From: Rhodosorus marinus CCMP1338
Lineage: Eukaryota; Plantae; Rhodophyta
Assembly (NCBI GenBank): GCA_029953675.1
Contig: JAMWBK010000010.1
Location: forward strand, 310,001-374,000
Direction of reading: 5' to 3'
DNA: 64,000 nucleotides
In this document: positions 27,401 through 58,596 of the stretch, piece by piece
How positions within the stretch are numbered: position 1 is the first letter of the stretch
How the letters are laid out: every line of letters starts with the position of its first letter
Translations under genes and position numbers: made by a program
The notes under the pieces: generated by a model
The model's database searches: none
Told to the model about the DNA's origin: nothing
What the model saw: the letters and a program-made list of their open reading frames with translations, nothing else

Positions 27401-28929
27401 CCGACTGTCCTAAAAATCCAGAATACGGTTTCCGAGTTTCTGCTCGGCTTTACCCCCTTCCTCAAATTGCTTTCGTGGCTTCTCGCGAACGAGTCCCCGC
27501 CCACAGCCTCGTACAGAATATGCATCCCGAATCTTCGATACTCTTCCAGAGGGTAATTCTTGTACATCAAATTTGCACATAGACGGCGAACAACTCACAT
27601 CTCCAATGAATCTCCCAACAGCTCCTTGCAACGAACACCAATCACATCAAAGAAGTAAAATCCTCCTATCAATTTACAATTAAAACAGAACAAATTTCAG
27701 ATTCTTTGTACCTGCCCAATCAAGTTCTAAGGAAATTCTGTCCTTGGCTCCAATCAATACAAACCCAAACCCCTCCCGCCGCCAGTCTTCCAACTGTCTT
27801 CAATCCCCCAACCCGAAAAAGAATTCCAAAAAAACAAAACTATCAGCTCGCGATCCGTTCCTCCTTTTTTTCTTCATTCTCCATTCATCTCAACTATTAA
27901 AAATTCAAGAAAAAAATTCCAAACCCTTCAAAGGGGTAATACGTGAAGGAAAACGTTCTCCTTACACCACCCCTCGACCTTCTTCAGCAATTAAATGCTT
28001 AAACCCTTTAAAATGAACAAAATAGATGATATCTACGGCTAGGAAAAGGGGGGGTAACTTATAGATCAGAAATGAGGAGGCCAAAGAAAAACAAAGGAGG
28101 GAGGGGAGGCAAAACCTTTTAATTTCTGAATTGAATTTATATTGAAACTTTGATGGGCTGATTAGTAGTTTTTAGGAATGTTTTGTGAATGTTATCTTGA
28201 CGTTTGTATACGAATCTTGTACAAACGAGGGTTTTCAAGCTTTTTTGTTATGTTTATCTTATTAAAAAATTGAGGGGACGTGTTTAGGAAAGGAGCTTCT
28301 TTTCGCCTCCTTTTTTAGCTAGGAACGGGGAAAGAGCTGTTGGTAGTGAGTGAGAGAGGTGGTGGAAGCTTGCTTTGCTTTATATATGTTGAAGGGGGTT
28401 TTGTAAGGGAGTGTGTTGGGTGTGGTGTCTTTGTGTTGTGGGAGGAAGTTGATCGGTGAAAATATTTGCTATTTTGGGGGTTTGGGCATTGTGCGCGGAA
28501 GGAAAAGGGGAAAAGAAACTGTACAAGCCAAGGAAAAAAGGGGGTCGTAGAATTTTTTTTGAGGTGGAGTTTTTTTTGGTTTTGCTTGGGAAGGAATCAG
28601 TGAGGGGGGTGCGTGGGGCGAGGGGAGAGGGATAGAGGATTTTGGTTGTGTTTCTACGCAATCGGTACGAAGGATAGGTCTTGTGAACGAGGGGAGAAAG
28701 CGGGATCTGTACAGCAGTTGAGTTTCTGCTTGTTGCTGAAGAGCGTGAGGAAGAGTTTGTGGGGCAGACGGAGAGCGTTTTTGTGTTGTGGGAGGCAAGG
28801 GTTTGTTGGTTTTTGCGGGAGCGGGGTTGATTAAGAGGACATTGTGGGGGATTAAAGGGGAAAACATGCCCTTCTTGGCTTTGTCGTTGTGAAGAAGAAG
28901 GTTTGGTAACGGAAAAGAGTAGCAGAATC

Positions 28930-30805
28930 ATGGAAATGGAGGAGCTGCCTGCCATGCCTATCGGTCACGGCGACACATCCGGACTCAGGCCCGTTGGGTC
29001 CCTAGGGAATCTCTCCTCAATTGGGGGTTCGGCTGGTAACTTGTCGAAACTGGGATCCATGGGGAATTTGGCTTCCCTCGGTTCATATGATAACCTTGGG
29101 AACCTGAAACACATGGGATCCGTGGGAAATTTAGGGGAGCTGTTGGAAAGCTCAGTTGGAAACCTAAAGGAGCTTGGGTCAGTAGGAAATCTGAAAGAAT
29201 TGGGGTCTGTAGGTAACTTGAAAGATCTTGGCTCTTTTGGGAACTCCAGACATGGGGGCTCCATCGCTAATTTGCAGGATTTTGGGTCCGCGGCTAACTT
29301 GAAGCATCTCGGGTCCACGGGAAACATGAAGGACTTCGGGTCAGTGGGAAACTTAAGAGATCTCGGGTCCGCGGGGAACCTGAAAGACCTCGGGTCGTTG
29401 GAGACTTTGAAGGAAATTGGTTCGTTGGGGAACTTGCGTCGTATGGGTTCTGTCGGTAACGTTAGGCCACTTGGGCTGAAGAGAATTTTGAGTTTGAATA
29501 ACGTTCTGTCTGGTGGAAATGGAACGCCAGTACTACTTGAAAAGTCGCGGGCAGCTTCGCCTTTGGGAATGTCGAGGGAAGACTCGTTTATTCGGGTGAT
29601 GGGCCGGGATGATTCGTTCTTGCTTTTGCCGAATTTCTCCAGAGAGAGCTCTATGCAGAATTTGCAACGGCGGAATATGAGTCGCATGGATTCCTTCCCG
29701 ACAATGTTATCTCAAGCGAATACGACAAGCCCCGAAAAGGGTAGACTTGCGGAGCACAGGGTTAGGGTTGAGGAACCGAAGCAGGAATTGCCGGGGTATC
29801 CTAAGGACACAGCTCAAGAACAACGTCCCGAACCAAAGAAGAGGAAGATGAGTCCGTCACAAAGGAAAGCCGGAAAGCCCGAAGAAGCGGTTCCAGCGGA
29901 CGGAAAGCGTGACACTCAAAATATGACGAAGAATACGGACAGCGACGATACAGATAAGGACGAGGGAGACTCAGATCTTTCCGGAGAAGAACAACTTGAC
30001 GCAGAAGAGTTAGGGCTGTCCGATATCCTCGGAACGACTGGTAAGCGGCACAACGGCTTTCTCGCTCTCACAAAGCTCGAAGATCTGATCGAAAGGATTT
30101 TCACATTTTTTTGACTTCTGTAAAACAGCTGCGAAAAGCCGAAAGATGACGGCAGAACAAAAAAAAGTGATGCTCCATAAGAGAAAGCTGAGAAACCGGC
30201 AGTCAGCCGCACGCTCACGCGAGAAGCACCGGAGAATGTTGCAGGAGGTTATTTTAGAAATCGATGAACTGCAGGCAAAGTCCGATTCTGTGCTGAAGAA
30301 GTGCGATACCTTTGCGGCGGAGAATCAAGGTCTCAGGGAGGAGAACATTAATTTCGCCCGCGAGAATGGCATGCTGAGAATGCACTTGAACAGGCTCTTG
30401 GCTTCCGAGAATAGCGCGCAGGGGATGAACCCCATGATTGCTGCCACTAGCGGAACGACTTGGAACTCTACGATGCCCGCTCAGATGCAACAGTCGATGG
30501 GGTCTATTGGGCCCTACATAGCGATGCCTCAGACAATGCAGCAGACAATGCCTCAGACAATGCAGCAGACAATGCAGCAGACAATGCAGCAGACAATGCA
30601 GCAGACAATGCAGCAGACAATGCAGCAGACAATGCCGCAAATGGCGCACGTTGGAACTCAATCGCAGAAACGCTCCAACTCTAGTACGAGACGTTTACAG
30701 GCAGCGCCGTCCATGGACAGCTCCGCGTACGGAAGGGAGCCGTCGGGTCAAAGTTTCCCGGCAGCGATGGCTGGAGGGAATATAGCCCTCTCCGGAGGGT
30801 CTTGA
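28930..30805 (+). CDS. bZIP transcription factor with N-terminal 9-aa repeat array and C-terminal QQTM repeats
   Basis: Basic region KRKLRNRQSAARSREK followed by heptad leucines. Intron 30041-30128 (phase 1) joins ORF 28903-30114 to ORF 30146-30805 in frame. Confidence 0.88.
28996..29463 (+). repeat. Coding 27-nt degenerate tandem repeat, about 17 units encoding GSxGNL(K/R)(D/E)L
   Basis: Protein reads ...GSVGNLKELGSVGNLKELGSVGNLKDL...GSVGNLRDLGSAGNLKDL...GSLGNLRRMGSVGNV. Synonymous positions are diverged while the protein motif is kept. Confidence 0.95.
30527..30643 (+). repeat. Coding 12-nt tandem repeat (C[AC][GT]CAGACAATG) x9, encoding (Q/P)QTM
   Basis: Near-perfect units visible directly in the sequence. 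Confidence 0.95.
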
Positions 30806-31352: not shown

Positions 31353-34300
31353 CTAACCCAGTTCTTTAGATGATGGTCCGGACTCTTGACCTGCTTCAAT
31401 CTTATCCAACACCTCCTCGTTTGCCAAGGCAAGTTGTACGTTCACCAAAGAGTGGAAGTAGGAGTCCTCCATATGATCTTCCAGTCCTTTGGGCACGTTC
31501 TTCAAAACCCCGTCCAACTGATTCATCCGGAGTTCAAGAGCCCTCTCCAACGCCACAGTGCTCAGTTCGTTACGAGTCGTTGGTGTTCCATCGTCAATCC
31601 ACAGCACTCCTTTTGCATTGACCACTGCACACCGGTTGACGTGGCCAAAGTTCCAATCCTGGCGTGGCATCCTCGCAACAATGTCACTCGCGTTCACTAG
31701 CCGCGCAGAGTCTCGAACGAGACGGTTGTACAGCGATACAAACGCGTGGTTACCAACTTTAGGAGAACCGTAATTGTACATAGTTAGTCTTAGGTCTGGG
31801 TACAACACGGCCATATCCGTCGCGGCGAGAGTTGCCAGCGCTCCGCCGAGAGAGTGCCCGGTAACGAAGAGATGGTACTTGCTGGACCCGTTGTTCGTAA
31901 GAAACGAAATCGTTTCCAAGATACTATCACGAACGGACTGGTACGATCGGAGAAAGCCATAGTGAACTGCTGGCTCCTCTGTCGCCCACTTATTGGCCTT
32001 TCGCATCCACGGGTTGGACTTGCTGATATCAACCTCAATGCTCTTGGATCCCGGCTCGAATGGAAACAGGAACATCATGGAATCGGTGAGCAAGTCTTTC
32101 CATGAGCTTTGCTCAGTCCCCCGAAAGGCGAGAACCAAAGTCTGACCTCGCCTCCAAATTCCCCACTCGCAGTCTGTTGCGATGTTCTTTCCGAGGATCA
32201 ACCGCTTCATTCTAAGCAGACCCAGGTTTCTTTGCTCTACGAGGGCCTGAAACTCCCCCCATTGTCGCGAGGTCAGCCTCCTGACCTTCTCGTCATTCTC
32301 AACCACCTGGTTCCCGGCATAGAGTACGCTGGACTCCTCATCAATGTTTCCGGAACCCTCAAATTCTTCCTCCTCCTCTTCCTCTTGAGCTTCGATTGCA
32401 TCAAACTCTTCCCCATCTGCGCGCAGGTTGATATAGGAGCCTTCAACGACAACTCGACCAGTACCGGCCGTGACAGCGCGCATGTCCCCCTCGCCCGCCT
32501 CCGCCTGGTTTCGTTCAGCTACCTCCGTTCGCTGTAACTCGAGAACTATTGTCGAGGGTTCTCCTTGACTCAGTTCGTCTGTGTTGAAGGTCGCGTATGC
32601 AAGCTTGGACGCCTCGCCAACAACGAAGCTACCCCACTACGTCGCAAAAGCAGTTGGTTAGAGCTCTGCTCCGGTGCTGCGCGATCAAGCAGAGTCAGTG
32701 CGTTGCTATAGCTTACCAACTCGACCCCAACTTCTACCGAAGGCTCCTCTGTATAGAGCGAAATCAGTTCGTCGATGGATGGGTTTGAACGTTTCGCAAA
32801 ACCGATGGTTATCCTGAGTTCAGGTGATAGTACGAGCGGCCCCAAATTGCTCTCAAACTCCTTGAGGGTGATCATACACAGCCCAGAAAAAACAGCCCTG
32901 ACGAGCGCGGCTGAACTGAGATGATAAACGGAGCCGTCGACTGCCTCCATCCCCATGGAGCTCTGTGGTTCGTTGTAGATCTCAAAGGCGAACCCAGCCA
33001 GAGAAATTGCCGTTTTCACGTCAAACTCAGAAGTCTCCATGAGCGAAGTCTCGGCTGTCTCAATGTCAACGGCAGGATCCGATATCCCCAAGAGCTCGAG
33101 AATCTCGGCGGCCAAGAACCGCTCCAGCATGGCCTCCGGTGCCCAACTTCCGTCCTCTTCGTATACTCGAACCGGGTATCCAGACAGACTGTAGTCTGCC
33201 GAATAATGAGACTTGCCGTGGGGTTGTGTCAACGCGCCTGTAGGCAACTGTGACAGACTTCCAATGATCGATGAGGACAATAAACTCCCCAGAAAATCAT
33301 CCTTCACCTCCCTCGTAACTCTGTCCGCAGCACCTTCATCTCCACTGAGTAACGCATCAACCCGATTAGCTGCGGCTTGTTCTTCCTCAAACGCTTGACC
33401 CGAAACAACCTCTACACACGCACAAAAAAGCGGAAAGAAAAATGTCTGAGCATCTCAAAACCATACACTTCGGACAACATCAATTCCATCAGCTTCATCG
33501 CCTCCTTCATCCACACGCTCTGGTGTGTACACTCTGGTGTTAGACTATCGAAGAGGCAGAAAAAGGGGTTTCCAATGCCCCAAGCACACAGGAAGTACAC
33601 TTGGAAGAGATGCAGTGTCGCAGAGAGTTTGAACAACAAGAATCCATACTGGGTTGACGACAATCCGACAAGAAGAAGAAAAGCAATCTGGGACGAACCA
33701 TGGAATCAAGGTATTCGAAGAGACGGGATACTAAGCAGAAGATCGAACTCTTGGGTGACTCGGATGACGACCCTCCCGCGATAGTTCGAAGACACATTAG
33801 CAAGATCAGAGCTAGTCCAATAAGTACCGAGGAGAGTTGAAAGACCAGCTTCCCACAATGAGCCAAAATTGTCGACGAGAGAGGCGAGCTAAGTATCCAC
33901 TTAGGAAACACAAAAGTTCAAGGCATGAAAAGACTTTTACACCCCCAGAACAGTCCAGTGGTGTTCGGGTGCTTGAGGATGGCTCTAGCGTGTCGTTTTG
34001 CGTTCTCAATGAGAGGGCTTTCTGGGGGACGGTACTTACTTTCAATGTATTCCTGGTTCTTCTTAGCCAACTCCATCTGAGAGTTGAGAAACTCATTCAC
34101 AGATATTCTAGAGCTCTCGATATTTTGATTAAGGAAATCGTTCATATTTTCTAGCGCAATATTTAGATTCCCACTGTACGGCGTGGATGAGTAGAACGAT
34201 TCGAAAGCTGGAAAGGGGGGAAAGAAGGGGACGCAAGTATCCACGTATTCAGTCACATGCCTTCCCGAACGATTGAGGAATACCTCCCTTACCTTTATCG

Positions 34301-53483: not shown

Positions 53484-56400
53484 ATGACTTGCATAGTCTG
53501 GGGGTACCCGGTTCCCACACGGCGATTTGTGCCACGCGGTCAGGTCCATACATGGAGCTGCCTCTTCCGTGCTGCATTAGAGCTCTCTATGGACAGCACC
53601 GCACCAACAAACGCCAGCCTGCTTCTTGTCGGACTTCCAGGCCTTGTCCTTGGACACTCTGCACTTGATGTTGGCATTCAGGTATCGCACGTGCTTGAAG
53701 GAGAATTCTCTACGGTCTGGAGCGCTCTAGAGGACAAGGCGTCTATGCTGTCGCATACTACCGCACCGCAAGGAGCTGAAGCGGTTCGACGGCAACATCT
53801 CGGGCGCCACAAGCGAGCGTTGAAACTAGCACACCTTGGCCTTTTTCAGATGCAGCTCGGAGCCTACAGGCCACCGAAATGGCACCTTTTACCGCGGCTA
53901 CGTGGAGACAACTACAAGCGCTCTTTCCCGACCCGGCGGAAGGTGACTTACCAGACGAGATTGCACAAGCTCTGGAATCTTTGCTCGCTCTGAATACCGA
54001 AACACTTAAGCGGCGGTGGGATTCAAGAAAAGCGGCCGACGAGGGCCTCATGTCGATCGTGGCACGTCTTCCTCAGGGCAAGAGCCCAGGCCCTAGCGGT
54101 CTCCGCGCGGAACACCTCCAAGGTGCAACTCAACAGACGCAAGTGGCGTTGATTCGTGTATTGCGACAACTGGCGACCGCTCCGGAGAAATTTTCCCCGG
54201 CTCTGACCCGCGCCCTTCGCAGCAGCCGACTCCTGCCGTTCGCGAAGCCTAACAAGGGTTCAGTGCCGCAGGAACATCCCGGAGTTCGCCCTATCGGAGT
54301 ACCAGAAGTTTTGCGCAAGGTAGCAACGCAATGGACTCTTCACGCGGTTATGGACAGGGTGCGTGAGCTCCTGGTACCCTTACAACTGGGTATTGGAGTA
54401 AGTGGCGGGTGCGAACGCTCACTTCACGCGATCCAGGCCCATTTGTCATGCGAACCCGATTCGGTGGTCCTTCGACTAGACCTGGAGAATGCCTTTAATC
54501 GCATCGACCGACGCCTTGCCAAGCAACTGGTGGACGAGCACTTCCCGGAGCTTGCACCAGTGTATAGACTTGGCTATGGAAGCAACAACGCGGACTCACC
54601 GACGCTCTGTGGCTGGCGATCTTCCCCTGGACAGAACGAAACCGACACCTCTCGCCTGACACTCCACGCAGCTACAGGAGTCCAACAGGGAGATCCACTG
54701 GGGCCGGTGCTACATGCACTATCCCTGGCGCCCTTTCTAAGAGCGTTGCGAGCCAAGTTCCCCAACGAAACGATTGTTGCTATCCACGACGATATCACGA
54801 TAGTCGGGTCGCTACAAGCCGTGAAGGCATCCCTGGCATGGGCAAAAACTGTGCTTCCCTCTCTTGGAGCACGCCTGCAACTCGGCAAGTGCACTGTGCA
54901 CGGGCGAACACTGACTACCACGCGAGTGGTCAACCACGAGATTCCTGGAGTGCAAGTGACCAGAGACGGAGTCACCATCCACTCGATACCGATAGGCAGC
55001 CGAGAATATATCGAACAGGAGTGCCCTGGGCTGCAAAATAAGCACGAGAAACTCTTTGAGGAAATTGCCAAGCTCCCACAACCGGAGCTTACGACGCAAA
55101 TTGCCCTCTTCAGGTTCTGTGCGGAAACGCGGCTAGACTATGTTCTACGATGCCTCGCATACGAGTTTGGAAGAACTCTGGCACGCGAGGCGGATGTGAT
55201 GACCAGATATCATCTGGAAATTCTCTTCGGAGGCCTCGCTACGACAGCTGTAGAGGACGACGAGTACGCAGAGCTGATCTCGGACCAAATCGCTCTGCCC
55301 TGCCGCTGGGGAGGGTTGGGTTTCGCTGCTCGAAAGCGCGTCCAACCCATCGCGTTTTACTCGTCATGGAGAAACACCTTCCGGAACAATGAAGATGAAT
55401 GGCCATACCTGACTGAACTAGAGCGGAAGGTTTCGGCAGAACGCTCACCAGACACATACGAGCCAATGGAGCAACGATGGTCGACTTCACAGCTGGCGGA
55501 CCAGATTTGTGCATCGTCGCGAGCAATACAACGGAGGCTCAGACCAGAAACTCCGCCACGGATCTTGGCACTGACCACTCTGCAACAACCGCGCGAAACA
55601 TCTCTTCGAAGCGCACCGGGCGAGACTGCAGCTTGGAATAATGGTTCAATACAACAAACCCTCTCTCGAGAGGCACACCATTGTGCATTCCAAAGGTTGG
55701 TCACCAACCCACGAATCTCCCCTGAAAACCGTGCTCGGATACGGTCCGCCGCGGGATCCGGGTCGGGAGTCTGGCTGCGTGAAATACCAACGCTGACACC
55801 GAAAAAATTGAGTGCGGTTGAGGTGCAGGTAAACGTTCGACAACTGCTGGGGCTGCCAATTCCGGGATTGCGGACCACCGAGAAGTGCACTAGTTGCCGG
55901 AGTAAACACGGAAGGACTGGGGTACAACGGTTTCACCACTGCCCAACATCAACTGGACTGTGGCAACGTAGGCACGACGAAATCTGCAGAGAGCTGGCAC
56001 GGTGGCTGAGGCGATGGAACTTCATGGACGTAGAGCAAGAACCTGAGGGGTACTTCGAGAACTACGGACTGCGACCTGATATCGTTGCTAGGCATCCGAG
56101 GAACAAACAAAGGTATGCGCTGGATGTGACGGTGGTGTCACCATTACAGGGAAAATATTTGCGGCGGAGCCAAGATGATAGCGGATACGCGGCGAGAGCT
56201 GCGGAGAAGTGGAAAATCGCTCACTACAAGGAAGCGATGGTGGTCGAGAAACCGGATGACAAGTTCATCCCGATAGCGATAGAGACGTTTGGGCGTACGG
56301 GGCAAATGGCACAAGAGTTCCTCCGCGACAGCTGCAAACACCTGCTGCACAGGAGTGAGGAGCTGAGAGACGTGAGATCGCAGATAAACCGGCAACTATG

Positions 56401-56503
56401 GCGAGGTAACGCAGAGATCGCACTAGGCGCTTTGCGAGTGGACCAGTTGGAGAATCCGCTGGTGCCTGTTTTTTCTTTTGAACGTAGCATGAGACCCCGG
56501 TAG
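53484..56503 (+). CDS. ORF2: reverse transcriptase + CCHC-like knuckle + PD-(D/E)xK restriction-like endonuclease; one -1 frameshift at 53841-53847
   Basis: RT: PGPSGLRAEHL, RPIGVPEVLRK, QLGIGVSGGCE, DLENAFNRIDR, GVQQGDPLGP, AIHDDITIVG. C-terminal: CTSC..HHC, RHDEI, RPDI, LDVTV, AAEKWKIAHY, FIPIAIETFG, LWRGNA. ORF 53879-56503 plus the upstream part of ORF 53271-53993. Confidence 0.93.
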
Positions 56504-56649: not shown

Positions 56650-58596
56650 TTTGGACGGCTTTGTTTGTGGAAAACGACGGAAAAAGCTGATAAAAAGCTA
56701 CAAGTATGATTGTGAAGGAGGTACGCGGGCCCTACCCCGAGCCTCTTGTGATCGCGGGCCCACACACCTCGGGTACCCGCGAAATGGAGAGGGCGAAAGA
56801 GCTGCTACAAGAGCAGCAGCAGCAGCAGCAGCAACAGCACCAGCATAGGGGAGCAGAACAGGAGGCAGAGAGGAATGCAGAGCAGGCCACAGCAGACCCA
56901 GCTGTCGCCTTTCTCCACCAGCTGCAGAGCTACGACCACTGCTATACCGCCCTGGGAATCGGCCAGTCGGACATCGCCGACTTCTACCAGGCCGCCTTCA
57001 ACCTCTATTCCCGCATCAAATGCTCAAAAGAACTTCAATCAGTGACAGGACGTCTGAATGAGCTCGCCAAAAAACCGCATATGTGGCAAGACGGACGAGC
57101 CACTACGACCCCGCCTCAACCCCCGCAGCAGCACCCGCGGACGGCGGCGGTCAATCAACATGCGGCAGAACCCATCATCAATCAACTTACGGAGGGGACA
57201 GGTGTCCTTGCCTCACTGGACTATGCCACGGCCTTCCCTGTTGCCGGTACCAGCAGCACACGGCCAACGTACGCTCAGAGGACTGCCCAAAGTACTCCAG
57301 CTCGAGAATCAGAGGCAACTCCGACCAGCCGGGCGCCCGGGCCCACAGAGCCAGCAGGCAGCGCTCCGACAGTTGCACGCCACTGTGGGAGGGTCCTCCT
57401 GGGGACCCGAGACCAAGCCGGTACTGGCGACCCTGAGGAATGTAAGACCGCCACGGATGGACGAGGTAGCCCCATCGGATTTCACCACTGTCCTTTGCAG
57501 AGCCTTGGGGATTCCGAGCTCTTATGTGGCGCACGTGGACTTCATCGCTTCCCATGCGTGCTTACTCTGCCATCCGGACGCGATTCCGATTCTACAAAGC
57601 GCCATCTCTCGGGGCGTTTTCAGGACGGGCATCTTCGGTTCGTTCACCCAGAGACACCCCGATCGGCAAGTGACTCTCTACACGGGCCAGGCACTGGATA
57701 CAGACAACCTGTTGGGCTATAATGAACGTCAGCTCATTGCCCCAGCGAATATCGGGGCTCAGACCCTGAAACGGGCGATTGAACAGACTATCCGGATCCG
57801 CGCGAGACTTCGCAGAAGGCAACTCTCGTTCAACACACTCGCAGCGATACACGAGTACCTGGAGAGCAGACTCGGAGCCCTACAAGCCACACAACGTACT
57901 CCAACGGTACCCGGGGAGAGCCCGCAACCCCCAGCGCCTGCAGCCGCCACGAACGCAGACCCTGAAGCCTCGTCCGTTCCAGGGGATGTACAGGCAGACC
58001 GTGGGAGAGTTGACGCCCCGGTTGAGACCAGTGCGACTTCCCAAGTACCTGAGAACGCAGCACACGAGGACAATCCCCATGCGGAGCTCCTCTGCAACCT
58101 TCCGGAGCCACCTCAACAGAAGCGCTCGCGCGTAGCCGCCGATGGCACCGGACCGGATACTGAGATGACTCCGGCAGCCGTGGAGACTCCACAGGATACC
58201 ACTGGGACACAGGTTGCCCTTGACGGCAACCATGACGCGATGGACACGCAGGAGAGCCAGGAAAACCCAGCCCAATAATGCCGAGCAGACGTAGGGGAAT
58301 CAAACGACGCCGCGAAGAGCCTCTATTCTTCTCGGATCGTCAAGACTGGATCAGGCGGAGGAGCGTCTTCGTCGACGACGTCACGGAAGGAGGCAGGCAG
58401 TGGACGCGCCTTACACACTGCCCCGTTCCCACACGGCGATTTGTGCGACGCGCCCAGGTTCACACATGGAGCTGCCTCTTCCGTGCTGCATTAGAGCTCT
58501 CTATGGACAGCACCGCACCAGCAAACGCCAGCCTGCTTCTTGTCGGACTTCCAGGCCTTGTCCTTGGACACTCTGCACTTGATGTTGGCATTCAGG
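56650..58596 (+). mobile_element. Copy 3: 5' part of the same element (5' UTR, ORF1, start of ORF2), truncated at its 3' end
   Basis: The last 176 bp match the start of copy 2 (about 7 mismatches by manual count). Homology ends abruptly at GGCATTCAGG, followed by tandem-repeat sequence. The 5' boundary is approximate. Confidence 0.85.
56706..58278 (+). CDS. Putative ORF1 (gag-like) of the retroelement, split by a +1 frameshift around 57300-57420
   Basis: Overlapping ORFs 56706-57722 (polyQ, helical N-terminus, PTYAQ motif typical of non-LTR ORF1) and 57058-58278 (globular middle, acidic disordered tail). The TAA stop overlaps the ORF2 ATG (TAATG, 58276-58280). Confidence 0.7.

Follow-up and report, generated by a model that had tools for sequence, protein, structure and literature searches.

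We describe a bZIP transcription factor gene (28930..30805, plus strand) in a 64,000-nucleotide stretch of contig JAMWBK010000010.1, hereafter the window, whose product carries at its N-terminus an array of 17 nonapeptide units (28984..29463, plus strand; aa 19-178) with the consensus L-K-E/D-L-G-S-V-G-N. The array is old and selected at the protein level, because synonymous sites between its units are saturated and the ratio of nonsynonymous to synonymous divergence (dN/dS) from the Rhodosorus marinus counterpart is 0.105. We tentatively read it as a multisite serine phospho-regulatory module in a bZIP factor of the Rhodosorus lineage. As the N-terminal regulatory region of the factor, the array would most likely work as follows: each unit offers one serine with a leucine at -5, Lys/Arg at -4, glycine at -1, asparagine at +3 and a further leucine at +4, a context that AMPK/SNF1/SnRK1-MARK kinases of the CaMK group prefer; adjacent sites have a Leu anchor in common, five stronger sites, basic at -3, come immediately downstream, and graded phosphorylation of up to ~16-22 serines would tune localisation, stability, partner binding or DNA binding. 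The responsible kinase may be SnRK1-like or Ca2+-dependent, two options that sequence alone cannot separate.

A nonapeptide array at the N-terminus of a bZIP factor

The serines that anchor the units lie at aa 24, 34, 43, 52, 64, 75, 84, 93, 102, 111, 120, 129, 138, 147, 156, 165 and 174, with spacings of 10, 9, 9, 12 and 11 residues followed by eleven exact nines across the last 12 units. Counted from the serine, which is present in 17/17 units, Gly at -1, Asn at +3 and L/M/V at +4 each occur in 16/17, L/M at -5 and a hydrophobic residue at -2 each in 14/17, Gly at +2 in 13/17 and K/R at -4 in 12/17; position -3 is occupied by D/E in eight units, by H in three and by K/R in two. The +4 leucine of each unit doubles as the -5 leucine of the next. 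The initial annotation of this DNA had described a 9-residue repeat with interlocked +4/-5 leucines at 28996-29463, an interval that lies inside the array as delimited here, and the 17 serine-anchored units with their eleven exact spacings agree with that description. Each unit also splits into three period-3 threads (L/L/V, K/G/G and E(D)/S/N), and the hydrophobic moment of the array peaks once, at 120 degrees, and falls almost to zero at 100 and between 160 and 180 degrees. Neither a kinase-site nor a beta-strand reading accounts for the period-3 pattern. The mean hydropathy of 0.483, compared with a boundary of 0.418, places the array on the compact side of the charge-hydropathy plot.

At the DNA level, Tandem Repeats Finder recovered only 4.6 copies at 73% matches, and pairwise identity between units is 53% for protein and 55% for DNA. 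An amino acid common to two units is encoded by the same codon in 32.7% of cases compared with 33.7% expected for independent draws from the gene's own codon usage, thus synonymous sites between units are saturated. All four TCN codons for serine, all four GGN codons for glycine and six leucine codons are in use, and the identical peptides of the units of S84 and S93 differ at 7/10 codons. Compared with R. marinus, the array has a dS of 0.41 and a dN of 0.043, and its dN/dS of 0.105 is undercut only by that of the bZIP domain. Serine is invariant in 16/16 R. marinus units as well, without any Thr or Ala, and the 14 amino-acid differences in the aligned units fall at -4, -3, -2, +1, +2 and +4, none of them at G(-1), S(0) or N(+3); by our own arithmetic, uniform placement would spare these three positions with a chance of (2/3)^14 ~ 0.003. 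The divergent codons and the old conservation at the protein level that the initial annotation had proposed are therefore borne out. In the ortholog comparison that it proposed, Ser is conserved, but G(-1) and N(+3) are conserved equally, and Ser is not uniquely so. One whole unit is present in the window and absent in R. marinus, and a 54-nt period with 83% matches lies within 29306-29407, which suggests that the middle part has recently gained or lost units. On the minus strand, a 240-aa open reading frame (ORF; 28965-29687) with an F-P-T-D-P-x-S-F-x periodicity was rejected as a gene: it is a by-product of the repeat, and the above dS and dN values show substitutions that fit the plus frame.

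The gene starts at the first ATG (28930) and consists of two exons, 28930-30040 and 30129-30805 including the stop codon, which together encode 595 aa. Between them lies an 88-nt GT..AG intron of phase 1 (30041..30128, plus strand), and only once this intron is removed is the gene recognisable as a bZIP: splicing restores the frame into the domain, and the translated reading frame then stays open through it. In the R. marinus transcript contig L001, which is collinear with the gene at 86.7% nucleotide identity, the counterpart of the intron measures 82 nt, with indels of 4 and 2 nt, and identity is 79% in the intron versus 90-92% in the flanking exons. Intron removal restores the frame in both sequences, and the junction peptide, G-T-T joined to A-A-K-S-R-K-M-T, is uninterrupted in two intronless relatives (proteins P0008 and P0009). 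The intron call is thus supported by the indels in L001, the restored frame and the contiguous junction peptide. Once spliced, the window gene and the R. marinus gene are collinear over 592-595 aa. In L001 (1-2684) the retained intron splits the gene into ORFs of 382 and 226 aa, and the public protein P0001 (UniRef A0A7S2ZHN0, 382 aa) reads into the retained intron and consequently lacks the bZIP. In a whole-protein search of 5.8 billion proteins the R. marinus sequence was the sole close relative, with 83% identity over the aligned part.

From the N-terminus, the protein is laid out as a leader (aa 1-18), the nonapeptide array, a Ser/Arg-containing segment (aa 179-262), a charged linker (aa 263-371), the bZIP (aa ~382-462) and a Gln/Met-rich tail with (M-Q-Q-T)n. 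The bZIP domain (30161..30403, plus strand) comprises a basic region that includes L-R-N-R-Q-S-A-A-R-S-R (30188-30220) and, directly after it, a heptad zipper with L-V-F-L-F-L-L at the heptad positions (aa ~415-464). The basic signature N-R-Q-S-A-A-R-S-R (aa 393-401) is of the N-x7-R type, conforms to N-x2-[SA]-A-x2-[SC]-R and is invariant in the window, R. marinus, P0008 and P0009. Both Pfam models score below threshold, bZIP_1 with E=1.4e-3 (19.2 bits, gathering 27.6) and bZIP_2 with E=6.1e-3 (17.1 bits, gathering 22.3); P0008 and P0009 carry records of both models, all of them weak or faint except bZIP_2 in P0008. The dN/dS of the domain relative to R. marinus is 0.047, the lowest in the gene.

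Kinase motifs in the array and in the adjoining segment

AMPK-family kinases share the motif LXRXXSXXXL, and MARKs, as well as AMPK, BRSK, NUAK and SIK, phosphorylate in microtubule-associated proteins a variant with K(-3), G(-1), an invariant N(+3) and an aliphatic +4 (PMC6890249). We defined a core motif with a hydrophobic residue at -5, a basic residue (K/R/H) at -4 or -3, the serine and a hydrophobic residue at +4, and a strict form with the basic residue at -3. Among the repeat serines, 11/17 fit the core motif (S24, 43, 64, 84, 93, 129, 138, 147, 156, 165 and 174), in accordance with the 10-11 fitting units first estimated, and together with S188, S219, S229, S241 and S255 downstream of the array they bring the number of core sites to 16, close to the about 17 initially proposed. 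The graded quality of the units was likewise well described, LRRMGS being the best and an acidic -3 occurring in eight. The pattern G-S-x-x-N-[LIVMF] is found in 14/17 window units and in 13/16 units of R. marinus. Only S43 and S174 have an exact [KR]-x-G-S, so that the Lys(-3) and hydrophilic -5 of the MARK variant are not reproduced, -5 being mostly Leu. In the part of the peptide-array set of 303 human Ser/Thr kinases that we compared, which covers AMPKA1 at -5 and -4 only, the highest values are for R/L/M/I/K at -5 and for K/R at -4, and D/E is lowest (PMC9876800). The unit is a hybrid, in which the canonical Leu(-5) is combined with the variant G(-1)-S-x-x-N(+3)-aliphatic(+4) and the basic residue stands one position further out, at -4.

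Directly after the array, a non-repeat segment (29464..29715, plus strand; aa 179-262) contains five strict sites of the form hydrophobic-x-basic-x-x-S-x-x-x-hydrophobic, namely S188 (29491-29493), S219 (29584-29586), S229 (29614-29616), S241 (29650-29652) and S255 (29692-29694), all on the plus strand. The basic residue at -3 is Arg in four of them and His at S188. Strict sites make up 5/14 serines in aa 179-270 as opposed to 3/471 serines in fifteen other ORFs of the window (binomial P ~2e-8), none of 20000 composition-preserving shuffles matched this number, and no strict site was found among the 28 serines of aa 271-595. Furthermore, four of the five keep their defining residues, or conservative replacements, in R. 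marinus. The additional RxxS sites that the initial annotation had noticed after the array are therefore present, in a segment enriched in strict sites. As it is non-repetitive, this cluster is the best independent support for the kinase-site reading and more telling than the array itself. One of its members (S255, in R-M-D-S-F-P at 29683-29700) resembles a 14-3-3 mode-I site (R-S-x-pS-x-P), and a single 14-3-3 site at this position is possible. The mode-I combination of Arg at -3/-4 with Pro at +2 does not occur in the array, where +2 is Gly in 13/17 units; Pro(+2) is found only at S255 and most units are without Arg(-3), hence the 14-3-3 array that had been suggested is unlikely.

Several properties of the array weigh against a phosphorylation module. 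The canonical Arg(-3) is mostly missing, K/R standing at -3 in only two units and an acidic residue in 8/17, with the basic residue at -4 instead. The canonical motif gives no kinase-related reason for the conserved G(+2) or, in part, for G(-1), and in their degree of conservation G(-1) and N(+3) match Ser. The 11 matches within the repeat represent one amplified event and not 11 independent ones; moreover, in a 9-residue period the -5 and +4 positions are one and the same residue, therefore only one hydrophobic and one basic residue are needed and we roughly estimate the probability of a chance fit to the core motif at ~0.07 for one consensus. With its many leucines, its compact-side position in the charge-hydropathy plot and its strict period-3 hydrophobic pattern, the array is atypical of a disordered kinase-docking region, and the best AlphaFold models put the serines in G-S turns between 7-residue strands.

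Comparison with known phosphorylated regulators shows likenesses as well as differences. Arabidopsis bZIP63 and other plant bZIPs are regulated by SnRK1. The window gene resembles bZIP63 in being an archaeplastid bZIP with serine sites of AMPK-family type outside the DNA-binding domain; bZIP63 has three sites and is not known to contain a repeat, and no orthology was found between it and the window gene, the relatives of which are confined to algal-like assemblies. The window is nuclear DNA of a Rhodosorus-type red alga and not of a land plant, so the plant SnRK1-bZIP case, in which the initial annotation had framed the gene, serves only as an analogy.

The closest motif-level precedent are the KXGS motifs of tau, MAP2 and MAP4, which are targets of MARK/AMPK-family kinases (PMC6890249) and in which, likewise, a repeated Ser is preceded by Gly at -1 and followed by Asn at +3 and an aliphatic +4, a pattern shared by 14/17 units. 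They form a multisite target whose phosphorylation switches binding, and at the motif level the array is similarly multisite. KXGS motifs differ in having Lys at -3 and a hydrophilic -5, whereas the array has Lys at -4, often an acidic -3, and Leu at -5; in addition, they recur with a period of ~31 in microtubule-associated proteins, unlike the interlocked sites of period 9 in a transcription factor, and the two are not homologous. CRTCs and class IIa HDACs, in which LXRXXSXXXL sites double as 14-3-3 sites (PMC6890249), are transcriptional regulators that also carry several sites with Leu(-5), a basic residue, Ser and Leu(+4), and their form is fitted by S174 (L-R-R-M-G-S-V-G-N-V), S188, S219, S229 and S255, the last with Pro at +2. 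They differ in that their two to four sites are dispersed and usually combine Arg(-3) with Pro(+2), whereas the array consists of 17 overlapping tandem sites, mostly without either. The AMPK/SnRK1 reading with which the analysis began hence stands in part: the motif fit, the KXGS precedent and the strict cluster speak for it, and the acidic -3 in 8/17 units and the fact that CDPK/CaMK kinases share the motif speak against it.

Competing explanations of the array

The strongest rival, though a doubtful one, gives the array a structural or self-assembling role. Folded as a beta-hairpin stack, as a beta-solenoid or in another regular form such as a three-fold PPII-like helix, it would serve oligomerisation, partner binding or condensates, with Gly, Ser and Asn as turn or ladder residues; the initial annotation had named a beta-solenoid or amyloid-like module as its alternative. 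Two AlphaFold2 runs gave the same topology, in which 7-residue strands V-G-N-L-K-E-L are joined by G-S turns, and it is this recurrence that speaks for such a fold. It was found, however, in the best of five models only, with a predicted local distance difference test (pLDDT) score over aa 60-160 of 73-83 in the first run and 55-71 in the second; the other four models of each run have a mean pLDDT of 35-45, and no residue reaches 90. A Foldseek search returned no match with E<1 and template modelling (TM) scores of at most 0.25, but its top, non-significant matches are solenoids (left-handed beta-helix acyltransferases, leucine-rich repeat (LRR) proteins and bactofilin). The hydropathy above the boundary and the three clean threads per unit would suit such a repeat, as would the conservation of G(-1), G(+2) and N(+3), which equals that of Ser; against this, a moment that peaks at 120 and is about zero at 160-180 degrees means that the predicted strands are not amphipathic. 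A structural repeat would also leave unexplained both the adjoining non-repeat cluster of strict sites and the fact that Ser is never replaced by Thr, Ala or Asn in 33 units. Of the alternative originally put forward, the recurrent strands thus count in its favour, and the low pLDDT, the lack of a Foldseek match with E<1 and the non-amphipathic strands do not.

L1, L4 and N9 of the array line up with the conserved LRR segment LxxLxLxxNxL, and there are weak sequence matches to this segment in LRR proteins (E 2e-3 to 10), which lend the structural explanation some support; a search of the Protein Data Bank sequences gave nothing significant, with weak LRR matches only (E 0.015). LRR units need at least 20 residues, typically 20-30 with the full motif, so that nine are too few for an LRR coil, and with Foldseek E>1 and no significant structural match this fold was rejected. 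The RTX beta-roll (GGxGxDxUx) shares with the array a period of nine and two Gly per unit; on direct reading no register aligns its Gly-Gly, its Asp and its hydrophobic position, there was no Pfam match, and it was rejected for this misfit. The consensus does not fit collagen-like, lipase G-x-S-x-G, nuclear-export-signal or beta-TrCP degron readings either.

We consider it improbable that kinases with no link to energy sensing phosphorylate the serines, either those of CDPK/CaMK type or acidophilic ones of CK1 type that would use the D/E at -3, in which case the signal would be calcium or another one. The five sites after the array (M-S-R-E-D-S-F and similar) fit a generic CaMK-group motif equally well, and D/E stands at -3 in 8/17 units, a residue that at this position favours CK1-type priming-independent sites. 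AMPK/Snf1/SnRK1 signalling has, furthermore, been described as unexplored in microalgae (PMC9664231). Against such kinases, G(-1) together with N(+3) and an aliphatic +4 has been documented specifically in AMPK-family (MARK) sites (PMC6890249), and Leu(-5) with K/R(-4) matches the preferences of AMPKA1 at the two positions compared. Least probable of all is a lineage-specific low-complexity expansion without site-specific function, a spacer or generic activation region in which only composition and length would be maintained: searches of 5.8 and 1.84 billion database proteins revealed the array in Rhodosorus alone, the two lineages differ by one whole unit and many unrelated proteins have superficially similar 9-residue tandem repeats, but position-specific conservation despite saturated synonymous sites, with a dN/dS of 0.105 and no change at G(-1), S(0) or N(+3), argues against it, and a constraint on composition alone would not keep a fixed register over 17 units.

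We therefore retain the multisite serine phosphorylation module as our tentative reading. A more specific form of it, that 17 AMPK-family-type sites at minimum spacing, with each Leu as both +4 and -5 anchor, might constitute an undescribed phospho-rheostat, we regard as rather unlikely.

Relatives, neighbouring genes and significance

More distant, intronless relatives of the gene were found in two Logan assemblies (L002, 2835-4070, SRR25760728; L003, 200-1306, SRR31646441), with 52% and 42% identity, respectively, over the aligned 100-aa bZIP segment. Both are without the array and instead carry a single N-terminal M-R-S-[IL]-G-S-I motif as well as four to five core-motif matches just after the zipper. 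This hints that such serine sites may be a family trait, one unit of which would have been amplified in Rhodosorus. The common N-terminus of the two relatives reads M-x-M-R-S-[IL]-G-S-I-S-S-E-L-C-E-M-Q-A-L-R-D-S, and the Ser motifs after the zipper are also conserved between them. Downstream on the opposite strand, L002 has an exportin-T-like gene and L003, in the same place, a long gene without Pfam annotation.

Searches of 5.8 billion proteins with the whole protein and with its N-terminal part found only the R. marinus orthologue, the other matches being LRR-like proteins. An exhaustive HMMER scan of 1.84 billion representatives yielded 161 matches, all to the repeat region; the 22 of these 161 that were inspected were rejected as homologues, since all are unrelated tandem repeats of 9-residue or similar period (e.g. 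giant-virus collagen-like, L-V-S-T-A-N-L-A-D, K-E-L-G-T-V-G-P-S and R-E-L-G-S-A-N-N-A) and none has a bZIP. Scanning metagenome contigs with the bZIP alignment gave 139 pattern matches, none of which was confirmed. No paper mentioning the peptide GSVGNL turned up in a literature search, and no other protein with this repeat and a bZIP was found in these database searches; the array accordingly appears to be a lineage-specific elaboration of an ordinary bZIP.

Outside the array and the bZIP, the protein contains two further features of note. The charged linker (29716..30040, plus strand), read from the translation, shows the weakest constraint in the gene (dN/dS 0.35); it comprises a K-K-R-K stretch (29836-29847), a candidate nuclear localisation signal, and an acidic Ser/Asp/Glu run (29938-30009). 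In the C-terminal tail, the (M-Q-Q-T)n tetrapeptide repeat (30530..30639, plus strand) was detected by Tandem Repeats Finder with a period of 12, 9.2 copies and 94% matches; R. marinus has a different number of copies and different variants. Unlike the old nonapeptide array, this is a DNA-level repeat of young age.

The genes next to the bZIP gene are ordinary eukaryotic genes. Upstream, a purine/G-rich region together with the 5' untranslated region (UTR; 28300-28929) is 81% identical to the R. marinus transcript over ~290 nt, which is unusually high conservation for non-coding DNA in this pair (intron 79%, 3' UTR 87%). Downstream lies a class-3 lipase gene (31353-32483, minus strand; Lipase_3 E=9e-29), convergent with the bZIP gene and with its stop codon ~550 nt from that of the latter. 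An 874-aa ORF at 53879-56503 with a reverse-transcriptase domain (RVT_1 E=1.5e-9) is probably a retroelement, and the ORFs adjoining it at 56706-58278 have no Pfam match. A scan of ten ORFs of the window identified no kinase gene.

For annotation, the finding means that databases fail to recognise the repeat protein as a bZIP, because its sole public relative (A0A7S2ZHN0) is a truncation caused by the retained intron. Should the array act as a rheostat, a single bZIP would convert kinase activity, and with it energy or Ca2+ status, into finely graded or ultrasensitive transcription, and phosphorylation might switch the Leu/Gly/Asn-rich array between compact or self-associating and extended states. 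If the array is phosphorylated, it would represent a naturally occurring case of kinase sites that overlap at minimum spacing, of use in studies of multisite phosphorylation logic, and would provide a concrete link from a kinase to a transcription factor in a red alga, a group in which transcriptional regulation is poorly known.

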